Shown here piece by piece: positions 1 through 59,224 of a DNA stretch of 64,000 bases (position 1 is its first letter; each line of letters starts with the position of its first letter). Below the pieces are notes generated by a model that was not told where the DNA came from, ran no database searches, and saw nothing but the letters and a program-made list of their open reading frames with translations. The stretch covers positions 2,036,765 through 2,100,764 of the forward strand of contig NW_003314282.1 of assembly GCF_000143415.4 (NCBI RefSeq). The letters are read 5' to 3'. Source of the stretch: Selaginella moellendorffii (Eukaryota > Plantae > Lycopodiophyta). Position numbers and translations under genes: made by a program.

Positions 1-3000
1 TTGTGGAGATCACGGTGACCTTTTGTCCTCCGAAACCTCTACGGTGAATTGCAGCTAATCTGCAATGGCTTTATTTTACTCATGCCGATCTTGCAGGTAC
101 TTGAGCACAACGTATTGCCTTATCTCAGGAAAATCAGATGCAGTACCGCTGCAGCTACAAGGGCTAGGCGTGGGTCCGCTCGCACAGTTTTCGCCCTGTG
201 AGCTTGATCTGGGAGAGCTCTGTTTATATTCCGTCAACAAGTTCAGTGTTGCTCTTGAGAACCTTGGGGAGCTGGATGTAAGATCTTGTCTTTGTAACGC
301 GAATTAAAGCTGATAAAATCACGTGCAGGCTCACTTTAGGCTGATGGAGGCACTGTCATCTCCTATGATAACCTTTACCTTTGAGCCCGATACCGGGACC
401 GTTGAGCCTAATGACGTTTTGGCAATTACAGTCAAAGTTTGTGGCAGCCTCATGGGAACTTTCAGCGAAAAGTTTTTGTGGGAAGTTACAGACTCAATCC
501 ACACGCTGTCACTGGCATTCAGAGGAAGTATTATTCGGCCCTCATTTTCTGTCGACACGACTGAACTAGACTTCGGTCCTCTTTCGTACGGTTTGCTTTC
601 CGTAAGGTACGTTACTGTGACCAACAGCAGTCCGGTTTCTTTACCTTTCCAGTTCCGGGTTCTACAACCTGAGAGTGGGTCACAAGAGTTCACAGTGACG
701 CCATGTTATTTTATACTGGGGCCTGAGGTGTGCATTTTTATTTACTTTCTTCTTTTGTTACTGTTCTTTTCTTCGTGCAGGAAAAGAAAATCGTTTCTAT
801 TGAATTGGTTCCATGGGAGGAGAGAAGATATGCCACGGTGATAAGCCTAGATATACCCAAAGTTGGCAAAGATTTTGCAACGATTCCTGTGCAAGCAAGA
901 TGTTTAGCTCCAACGGTGAGAAGTCTGCGTCTTGTCATGTTTTGACAAGCTCGCCGCAGGTCACTATATCATGCGATTGCTTGGATTATGGAACGTGCTT
1001 TCTGCGTTATGGCTACACCAAAACATTGAGCTTGATAAACGATTCCCTGGTGCCCGCGAGATATGAAATCCAAGCACAAGAAAAGGAAACGGAGAATCTT
1101 GCTATCTTGCGGCTGAAAGCTGAGAGTGGTTTTATAGAGCCTGGCTCGAGCTTACCGCTGGAGTTTACACTATCAACTGTGGCTCTTGGTGACGTTAGTC
1201 TTTCTGCAATCGTCAGCATATCCGGGAAAGAGTATACTCATTATCTAATCAAAGTCCTGGCAACCTCGGTTGGGCCCATAATTAAGATTGAAAAACCAAT
1301 TAGCAAAAAGCTCCATTCAGCACGGCAGCAGACAGAAGAGGCAGATACCGAGTGGGTACCTGCTCTTGATTTTGGGAAGGTTCAGGTTCTCAGAGATCAC
1401 CATCTCAGTGTGGTCTTAAGAAATGCGTGTTGTATTCGTGCACCGCTCAAGATTTCTCTTGGGAAAAAGGATTCCATGTACCACTTGAATCTGAGCGACG
1501 TGCCTCTGGACCCTTTTGAAGCTGTGGAGTTGAAGGTAACTTGTTGCATATGACATTTCTACTACTTAATCCCCTATGACAGGTTCGGGCCTATATGGAT
1601 GATGCAGGCAAATTCAATGACAAGGTGACAATACTTTTCGAAGGTGGCGAGTTGTTCATTCCGCTGTCGGCTGTAGGAGTTGGCTCGACTTTAGTTTGCA
1701 AAGAGTTTCAAGAAGGTTTTGTTCACTTTGGTGATCAATTCACGCTACGGCATTTCTCCTACACCATTGAGGTACAAAACATGGGCAGAAAGCCACAGAC
1801 GCTGGCTTGGGATAACGACACCACCAGGAAGCAAAGGGCTATCAACAAATCCTTGGCAATGGAGGCAGCTGACCAGAAAAAATCGGGCAACAAAAAGGCC
1901 GCTCTGGTCGTCCCAGAACCTGTACCCGTCTTTACGATCACACCCGACAAGACAGTCATCAAGCAATACTCGCCGTTCTCGCTCACTGTCTCAGGATACA
2001 CCACAAATCCAGGCCATATCCAAGAGGACTTTACGTGCAAAGTCACCAGCGCAAAAGACATGTACTACCTCAAGATTTCGGTGGATGCGGACATGGCCGC
2101 ATTGACACTCGTATTTTCTGAGACTACGCTGACTTTTGTTCAGAACAATGGTTGGGGAAAGGACGGTCCTCACGAGCTCAGCAGGACCTTGACTTGTGAG
2201 AACGTTTCCAAGTTGCCTCTTACGTTCTCCCTAGCAGTAAAGCCTCCTTTTTCAATCAACCAGGCGGAATGGACTCTACGAGCGGGTGGCTCCGGCAGTG
2301 TTGTGGTCTCACTTGAGAAGCAAGACATTGCAGAAAGGCACAGCACTGTGCTTTATGGTAAATTGGATATCCTCTACACGGGTACCTTGGAAAGGAACGG
2401 TATCGATTTGATAGCACATATCAACTATCCCAACCTCTCTGTGAACCAGAGCAGTCTGGATTTCGGGTAAGCATTATTGCTCTTCCACTGTTCGATTAAA
2501 CATGTGCTGTCCGCTAGGTGCATCTTGGAGTTAACATACACGAGGATGCACATTGAGCTCAAAAACTCGAGCGCCCTTGACGTGTGGTACAGCTGGATGC
2601 TTGATGACGGGTATGGTGACGGTATTCATGTCTCTCAAAATATACTCCAGGATAGCGGGGGCCTCAAAATTCCTACAAATTACATTTTTGATATTCTTCC
2701 TGTGAGAGGGTACCTTGAACCAGGGGAGCAAGAAACAGTGGAGGTGTCTTACTATGGGCATTGTGGATATCAATGTCAAGTGTCGGCTATATGCGAGGTA
2801 TTTTTCCATGGGCTGCAACGTTTTGCTGACGTGAGTTGAGTCCAGGTGAAAGGCGGCCCGGACTACATTGTCGCATTAAGCGCCGAGTCAGGAACCATCG
2901 CGCATGCTCTCAGTCGCGTGGCTCTAGATTATAATGTCCAGCCTTTCAATAAGGCCTCAACCAAAGAGTTTACGTTATCAAATCCAGGGAAGGTACCATT

Positions 3001-58100: not shown

Positions 58101-59224
58101 AGGACTGATTGCTTGTCTTGTTCTGCACCTTTGACCTCAGCTCGTCTGTTGAGTCTGGTCCCAGTTTACCGAGCACAACATACCCCAAAGCTTGCTGCCG
58201 TTTGTAATCCATCAAAGTGTAAGACTTGAATTGTCTCTGCCATGGACTTCCGTTTGTGGCAAGTGTTAGTAAGGCTAGAAAAAAACCTGGCGATTAGGAC
58301 TCCTAAAGGCAAGCCGCGGATCCTGGGCAGGAGGAAACTGCTTTCCTGTCTTAGCTGACCGCTTTGACATTTCTTTGATTTCCTTCTGTCTTGCTCTCTC
58401 GACAGCATTGAGGCTGCTTTTTTTTCTACCACTGCTTGGAGCTTGGGAATCAGAATTGATGCTGTCGTGCTGCTTCCTGAAGCTATCTTGCTCCTCATAC
58501 ATCTTGTGCGGTAGGCATTTGTCAATTACATCTGTGGCACTCGAAAAATTGCAGCCAAGCGGTAACTCTGTCATGTGAGGTTGAGAGTAGCTTATGCTGC
58601 AATGCAACTCGTTGAAGAAACTGTCATCTTCAGACACGCTATTGTCGATAGCCCGGGTTATCGATTGTGTGTTTGGAATTAGTGATGCCTCTGGGTTGTC
58701 AAGAAGTCCCGTCCATAAATCCTGGACATGGGGTTCCTGCGGCTTGCAACTAAAGAGAGGATGTGATCTCGCAAAGTGATATGACTTACTTTTTACGCGC
58801 CAGAAACCAGTACATGCGTTCCAGCAGGGGTCCAATTCCATCCTCGGGTCCACAGTTGACGATATTCTCTATCTCACCAGGAATGACAGGAACCTCCTTT
58901 TTCTGCAAATGGGCACGGTCATTGGGGTCACACGGATCCTTTAAATGCTACCCGAAAAATTTTTTCAAGCTGCGCCCAGTTATCTTTCTTCTTTGCTAGC
59001 CTTGTTCCATTGTCAAACGAGTGCATCTGAATGTCCTGCGGATAGTACTGGGAGAAAATTTCGGCGACCAAGAAGCCATTAGAAAAGTCCCTGAAATGAA
59101 AGTAAGAATCAACAGCTCTCTATCAAAAGGATTGTTACCTGCGAACGTTCTTGATAGGCTGTGATAGGTTGAGTGTAATGAGCCATCGCAAAACATCACG
59201 TCGTAGAGCAGGGAAGCCCCGCAT
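52141..59224 (-). CDS. SPATA4: SPATA4-like CH-domain protein with very long low-complexity C-terminal region (multi-exon)
   Basis: Exons 59224-59139, 59090-58952 and from 58902 splice to [92 protein letters not shown]...LLERMYWFL. This matches the recalled SPATA4 motifs VLRWL...[13 protein letters not shown]...[18 protein letters not shown]. Long minus-strand exons (58275-, 56634-, 55873-, 54298-, 53584-, 52424-) follow with ~50-nt introns. The 3' end (TAA at 52141) and single-gene continuity are inferred. Confidence 0.78.

Follow-up and report, generated by a model that had tools for sequence, protein, structure and literature searches.

The 64,000-nucleotide stretch of the Selaginella moellendorffii genome analysed here (hereafter the window; contig NW_003314282.1, positions 2,036,765 to 2,100,764 of the forward strand) contains genes for HYDIN, SPEF1 and SPATA4/FAP178, along with one centrin-like gene and one that may be CEP295-like, all co-located within 59 kb of transposon-rich DNA. 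This physical cluster is a genuine grouping. It comprises two tight pairs, HYDIN with SPEF1 and the CEP295-like with the centrin-like gene, and one outlier, SPATA4/FAP178, which is found 37 kb beyond the four-gene group with Helitron and pseudogene debris in between. HYDIN and SPEF1 are arranged in tandem, 155 bp apart, and the CEP295-like and centrin-like genes are arranged head to head, with 423 bp between their start codons. The initial annotation of this DNA had placed the first four genes within 22 kb, and the coordinates agree. The genes and the elements attached to them are the following, in the coordinates of the window.

1..13465, plus strand: HYDIN, about 90% of the gene up to its 3' end, its first part preceding the window (Pfam domains, tblastn colinearity)
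13466..13620, plus strand: spacer from the HYDIN stop to the SPEF1 start, 155 bp, GC content 0.31, read from the sequence
13621..14714, plus strand: SPEF1 orthologue, 9 exons, 220 amino acids, beginning with a CH_2 domain and ending in a helical-looking tail (Pfam, PDB, hand-built model)
19427..20160, minus strand: CEP295-like coiled-coil gene, five N-terminal exons, at least 179 amino acids; the 3' end is undefined and may reach about 18.57 kb
20160-20077, 20029-19934, 19889-19773, 19723-19640 and 19583-19427, minus strand: exons of the CEP295-like gene, with in-frame joins and GT-AG introns of 44-56 nt
20161..20583, no strand: divergent spacer between the CEP295-like and centrin-like genes, 423 bp between start codons, a candidate bidirectional promoter
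20584..21771, plus strand: centrin-like EF-hand gene, 9 exons, 266 amino acids, which may run to about 22047 (PDB, hand-built model)
52427..58073, minus strand: chain of long exons with open reading frames of 90-524 amino acids, which form a large orphan gene of their own or else extend the SPATA4-like gene at its C-terminal end
58275..59250, minus strand: SPATA4/FAP178 orthologue, a CH_2 protein with a minimal model of 265 amino acids, its first two exons uncertain (Pfam, PDB)

Four gene models were built by hand, and the Pfam, PDB and atlas searches were run exon by exon. In the hand-built models every intron has GT-AG ends and a length of 40-86 nt, and every reading frame closes. An exon-chaining script served as a hint only; elsewhere it made exons too long and called spurious genes where the DNA is non-coding.

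The open reading frames of HYDIN (323-13465) encode HYDIN_VesB_CFA65-like_Ig, Ig_CFAP65_4th, ASH and PapD-like domains recognised by Pfam, which is the Ig/ASH/PapD-like array expected of this protein. In tblastn comparisons, residues 472-4778 of Chlorokybus HYDIN align in order to positions 98-13459, and the Adiantum and Haematococcus proteins are likewise colinear with the window gene, which, as far as it is covered, is apparently intact. For the internal adenylate-kinase-like domain of HYDIN, the Pfam families AAA_33, ADK, AAA_17 and AAA_18 were matched at E-values of 1e-4 to 2e-3, all short of the cut-off, and PF17213 was not reported. The closest relative found is Ginkgo Gb_10291 with 45-47% identity, followed by algal proteins with 33-36%; a search with the Chlorokybus protein returned algal and animal sequences only. 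The 5' part of the gene has introns of 47-61 nt and a GC content of 0.46-0.5, and the 3' block at 7610-13465 (5.86 kb) is a single intron-free exon of 1951 codons with a GC content of 0.54-0.62. The Ginkgo model, 1936 amino acids in length, spans exactly this terminal block. This exon occurs in many RNA-like contig sets from which its neighbours are missing, an unexpected pattern for a gene used in sperm only.

The SPEF1 model of nine exons closes in frame, with introns of 43-86 nt that are GT-AG throughout. Its N-terminal CH_2 domain was matched by Pfam on two exons, at 1.8e-12 and 1.7e-4, and its C-terminus reads as a heptad-rich, helical-looking stretch. The PDB matches of its exons are SPEF1 proteins only (9nw3 at 1e-14, then 1.7e-9 and 1e-8, with 2ee7 among the best), and no SPATA4 or FAP178 structure occurs among them at E-values up to 1. 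By this search the nearer relative of the gene is SPEF1, and not its paralogue SPATA4/FAP178.

The reverse is found at the other end of the cluster, where a CH_2 domain is encoded on the minus strand at 59.1-58.8 kb (Pfam, 7.3e-18). Its PDB matches are SPATA4 (9ijj, 1.4e-15) and the Chlamydomonas protein FAP178 (7n61/7som, 1.9e-13), compared with 3e-7 for SPEF1, which makes SPATA4/FAP178 its closest group. The minimal model ends with a stop codon at 58275 and has 265 amino acids, where about 220-300 are expected; long exons on the same strand, less than 200 bp further on, might splice in. The SPEF1 and SPATA4-like proteins are 31% identical over 97 amino acids and each is nearest to its own orthologue group, so that they are ancient paralogues and not the result of a local or recent duplication. 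The clustered genes had been described as coming from mostly unrelated families, which does not apply to these two, both being CH_2 proteins. The identities assigned to HYDIN, SPEF1 and the SPATA4-like gene are borne out by the Pfam domains, the PDB matches and the colinearity of HYDIN with its orthologues.

Structural studies assign SPATA4, which is the same protein as FAP178, to the C2 seam and locate HYDIN at C2b (10.1101/2024.08.06.606614), and SPEF1 has been placed on the central-pair seams (PMC11642885). Since published structures put all three proteins on or around the central-pair microtubules, the trio belongs to one structure, the central pair. In domain content and best matches the window genes correspond to HYDIN, SPEF1 and SPATA4/FAP178 of motile cilia in Chlamydomonas, Tetrahymena and mouse sperm; they differ from these central-apparatus proteins in being land-plant copies and in that the SPATA4-like protein may have a very long extra tail.

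Such a grouping is unlikely to be a chance outcome. In a rough binomial estimate with uniform gene placement, in which the genome was assumed to have about 22,000 genes, some 60 of them for the central apparatus, a run of 6-8 genes with at least three central-apparatus genes is expected 0.004-0.009 times per genome, so that by this estimate the trio is more clustered than chance predicts. For 300 generic ciliary genes the same calculation gives 0.5-1.1 runs of 6-8 genes per genome with at least three such genes, 0.007-0.025 with at least four and <0.001 with at least five. The earlier statement that the cluster is unlikely by chance therefore stands for the trio (0.004-0.009); in its original form, five ciliary genes out of five, it leaned on the centrin and CEP295 calls, which are weaker than stated.

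The first of these two calls concerns a gene whose model opens with an N-terminal extension of centrin type; a single EF-hand pair, an IQ-like stretch and a helical, acidic tail follow, and the introns are 41-57 nt long. The best PDB matches of its exon 2 are centrin-2 and centrin-1 at 2e-8 (centrin residues 18-48), compared with 1e-4 for calmodulin, and a centrin-type N-terminal signature precedes the first EF-hand. Exon 3 encodes a generic EF-hand, and the second loop of the pair is degenerate. A second EF pair was looked for without success, and the downstream exons gave neither EF-hand nor PDB matches. Like the canonical centrins (centrin-1/2, caltractin), the product has the signature around 'PELT..QKQE..E.F.L.D..G.G' followed by an EF-hand pair; unlike them, it has its C-terminal lobe replaced by the IQ-like and helical tail and is 266 instead of about 170 amino acids long. 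Judged by its sequence, the gene is centrin-derived and not a canonical centrin, and may be termed a half-centrin. The centrin-like call of the initial annotation thus finds support in the N-terminal signature (2e-8) and is weakened by the tail without EF-hands that comes after the only EF-hand pair.

On the opposite side of the 423-bp spacer, the five minus-strand exons join in frame, and the CEP295-like gene looks like a real spliced gene. Four segments of its exons compared with the PDB matched no ciliary chain. The C-terminal ALMS motif and the length of more than 1000 amino acids expected of CEP295 were not found: minus-strand segments from 20412 to 18029 gave no ALMS_motif match in Pfam at E-values up to 1, and the span allows a few hundred residues only. 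The spliced N-terminus would align to that of human CEP295 over some 70 residues, gap-free and with roughly one residue in three identical, which is a lead and not a test. The putative likeness to CEP295/Ana1 and CEP295NL/DDC8 lies in the pattern 'LQVR.QER ... QRR ... WE ... LE ... G.GHR.A', and the window gene differs from CEP295/Ana1 in appearing far shorter and having no detected ALMS motif. A survey reported Ana1/CEP295 in human and fly only, not in moss or Arabidopsis (PMC5371999), and plant basal-body coiled-coil proteins, for example BLD10, are too divergent for BLAST (10.1101/2021.07.25.453666). Downstream of the five exons, the minus-strand segment 18954-19205 resembles the C-terminal part of IWS1 at an E-value of 0.1, with the motif GKL.EWSR. 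This segment may be a fragment of another gene, and for this reason the 3' end of the CEP295-like gene is uncertain.

The chain of long exons next to the SPATA4-like gene contains open reading frames whose length cannot be due to chance. The exons are linked by introns of about 50 nt according to the exon-chaining script, which was unreliable elsewhere. Their predicted product is rich in Ser, Pro, Glu and Lys. The exons have no Pfam match, no neighbour in the atlas and no homologue of 288-917 amino acids among those searched, the atlas and homologue searches having used the open reading frame of 524 amino acids. The chain is either a large tail of the SPATA4-like protein or a sixth gene.

The remainder of the window had been described as transposon or pseudogene debris. 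This is largely confirmed by Helitron Rep, PIF1 and RPA genes and by RT_RNaseH, DDE_Tnp_4, AMP-binding, kinase and P450 sequences; the description is incomplete in that it did not list the orphan exon chain at 58.07-52.4 kb. The following elements were identified.

16924..17148, minus strand: RT/RNase H retrotransposon fragment between SPEF1 and the CEP295-like gene (Pfam RT_RNaseH, 7.7e-14)
about 26.7-34.3 kb, strand not given: diverged second Helitron (translations, Pfam)
32.6 kb, strand not given: DDE_Tnp_4 fragment (Pfam)
35816..36975, plus strand: C-terminal fragment of an AMP-binding (acyl-activating) enzyme, its C-terminal third (Pfam AMP-binding_C, 9e-15)
37.1-37.4 kb, strand not given: purple-acid-phosphatase-like fragment, seen in translation only and with no Pfam match
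39112..47606, minus strand: Helitron with Rep (Helitron_like_N), PIF1, Pif1_2B_dom and REPA_OB_2, containing an assembly gap
45570..45669, no strand: assembly gap of nominally 100 N, which separates the Rep domain of the Helitron from its helicase
49068-49503, strand not given: partial duplicate of the AMP-binding enzyme (translation)
about 51.0-51.3 kb, strand not given: degenerate kinase pieces (Pfam, translation)
61019..62454, plus strand: cytochrome P450 with a weak Pfam p450 match and a 1-nt frameshift at about 61840, outside positions 1-59224

The P450 frame shifts in the I-helix region, where a run of T at 61830-61850 is 1 nt short as read from the sequence; the gene is either a pseudogene or affected by a homopolymer assembly error. 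Two pairs of blocks, 35816-36253/49068-49503 and 34953-35477/47988-48500, are duplicated astride the Helitron, one block being inverted with 89% identity. The AMP-binding fragment and the flank duplication suggest either gene-fragment capture or segmental duplication. The GC-rich stretch at 24400-25130, with long open reading frames on both strands, repeated peptide motifs (FREKS...GPK) and no Pfam match, is probably a repeat.

The Helitron at 39112..47606 contains the gap. To the right of the gap, minus-strand segments from 46484 to 45687 match positions 14-191 of the Helitron_like_N profile; to the left are PIF1 from 44709, Pif1_2B at 43960-43103 and a gene for an RPA OB-fold protein at about 40.4-39.4 kb, all on the minus strand. 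The Rep-helicase-RPA order on a single strand is canonical for a plant Helitron, and the two sides of the gap therefore very probably belong together. A stop codon is located directly to the right of the gap. The gap could not be bridged, the second Helitron copy being too diverged and an exact look-up of the product of the flanking open reading frame returning no record. None of the ciliary genes is touched by it.

Taken together, we favour, with middling confidence, a genuine, lineage-specific grouping of sperm-flagellum genes in gene-poor, transposon-rich DNA, of which co-regulation would be the most likely functional meaning. Genes used only in spermatogenesis would have ended up, and been tolerated or kept, in locally silent chromatin common to them, and the very short spacers could let neighbours use regulatory DNA in common. 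The spacers, 155 bp in the tandem pair and 423 bp in the head-to-head pair, are suggestive in this respect. Testis-specific gene clusters in Drosophila are an example of co-expressed tissue-specific neighbourhoods. The window resembles these clusters by having non-homologous genes of one cell type side by side, very short spacers and a head-to-head pair; it differs in that the RNA-like sets argue against simple co-expression with HYDIN, co-expression being what defines such neighbourhoods, and in that 37 kb of transposon debris interrupts the group.

A number of results weigh against this interpretation, beginning with transcription. When words sampled from the 5.86-kb HYDIN exon were looked up in 11 RNA-like contig sets, which derive from several studies and include no identified spermatogenic sample, 0.67-0.89 of them were present. 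Six of the 11 were also scored on the adjacent positions 13500-23000, where 0.00-0.01 of the words were present; the exon models predict about 0.04-0.06 if SPEF1 alone had been assembled and about 0.17 if all three neighbours had been. HYDIN RNA with no trace of its neighbours either counts against simple co-expression or means that HYDIN transcription in these sets is non-spermatogenic. The sets also argue against read-through from HYDIN into SPEF1. Of the raw RNA run X10, 0 reads fell on 17.5-23.4 kb, a result that lacks a positive control. Runs X4-X6 were discarded as RNA evidence on 17500-23400, as they proved to be low-coverage DNA.

The promoters and the comparison with other genomes point in the same direction. 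AACCGY sites (DUO1-type) number 18, compared with 27 expected, and none is located in a promoter; k-mers common to three promoters are at chance level, and the 423-bp spacer contains no DUO1-type site and no k-mer in common with the other promoters above chance. In seven other HYDIN loci, those of Adiantum (fern), Pedinophyceae sp. and Trebouxia sp. (green algae) and four further eukaryotes, with no lycophyte or bryophyte among them, the SPEF1, SPATA4, centrin-like and CEP295-like models found no match within 10 kb of HYDIN, and the gene order is not kept. Because no neighbour gene adjoins HYDIN in these loci, the arrangement is not an ancestral one and may be confined to the lineage of Selaginella. 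The co-regulated spermatogenesis neighbourhood initially proposed thus finds no support in the RNA-like sets, the promoter motifs or the seven-locus synteny, and the synteny comparison suggested along with it revealed no conserved linkage in the fern, the two green algae or the four further eukaryotes.

The composition of the cluster is also less certain than it had seemed. Two of the five identifications, centrin-like and CEP295-like, are weaker than first stated: the half-centrin has one EF-hand pair in 266 amino acids, where a centrin has four EF-hands in two lobes and about 170 amino acids, and nothing in Pfam, the PDB or the atlas matches the CEP295-like exons. The orphan exons could constitute a sixth, non-ciliary gene. 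As to the chance estimate, its gene numbers are assumptions, its category was picked after the data had been seen, and it is not a genome permutation.

The most likely alternative, which we consider a realistic possibility, is co-location without regulatory meaning, in which sperm-only genes are survivors in a gene-poor, transposon-rich region, placed there by drift or rearrangement. It is consistent with the abundance of Helitrons, retroelement debris and gene fragments in the region, with the transcription of HYDIN in many RNA-like sets without its neighbours and with the lack of a common motif and of conserved synteny in the comparisons above, and runs of 6-8 genes with at least three generic ciliary genes are in any case expected 0.5-1.1 times per genome. 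It accounts less well for the fact that all three secure genes serve a single small structure, the central apparatus, for which 0.004-0.009 runs are expected, and fully independent regulation sits poorly with spacers as short as 155 and 423 bp.

It is also possible, if rather unlikely, that the cluster has been overcalled. HYDIN, SPEF1 and SPATA4/FAP178 would then be its only flagellar genes, the EF-hand and coiled-coil genes having other roles or being in decay and the orphan exons belonging to an unrelated gene. The single EF pair with its degenerate second loop, the lack of matches of the coiled-coil gene in Pfam, PDB and the atlas, the weak IWS1 likeness of its presumed 3' region (E-value 0.1) and the orphan exons without relatives found all fit this explanation, as does RNA run X10, which is empty over both genes, though with no positive control. 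Both genes, however, have clean multi-exon frames with typical introns of 41-57 nt, and exon 2 of the EF-hand gene is nearest to centrins and not to calmodulin. That the linkage is an assembly artefact, a wrong join at the gap bringing SPATA4/FAP178 beside the HYDIN-SPEF1 group, is very improbable: the gap at 45570-45669, nominally 100 N, has a stop codon just to its right, no independent contig across it was obtained, and the diverged second Helitron copy does not bridge it, but the sequences on its two sides are parts of a single-strand Helitron array in canonical order, Rep to the right and PIF1/Pif1_2B/RPA to the left, and the four-gene group at 1-22 kb is independent of the gap.

The favoured interpretation, a lineage-specific sperm-flagellum gene grouping, can be extended to a broader proposal, which in its full form we regard as speculative and improbable. 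Many small sperm-motility clusters may exist across the Selaginella genome, kept together through common promoters or through chromatin opened in spermatogenesis, and the present locus would combine the central-pair trio with a head-to-head centriole module, a cryptic plant CEP295 homologue and its half-centrin partner, so far unrecognised in plants.

The genes of motile sperm are the main gene set lost by seed plants, and their organisation and switching in early land plants are poorly known. If the grouping is only positional, the analysis still provides corrected models for five genes with tiny exons that open reading frame tracks miss. If co-regulated neighbourhoods of this kind are real, the neighbours of ciliary genes would offer a route to new, fast-evolving components, the candidates at this locus being the half-centrin, the protein that may be a CEP295 homologue and the long orphan product encoded next to SPATA4, and the window would offer a case outside metabolism in which the clustering of genes by function can readily be studied.

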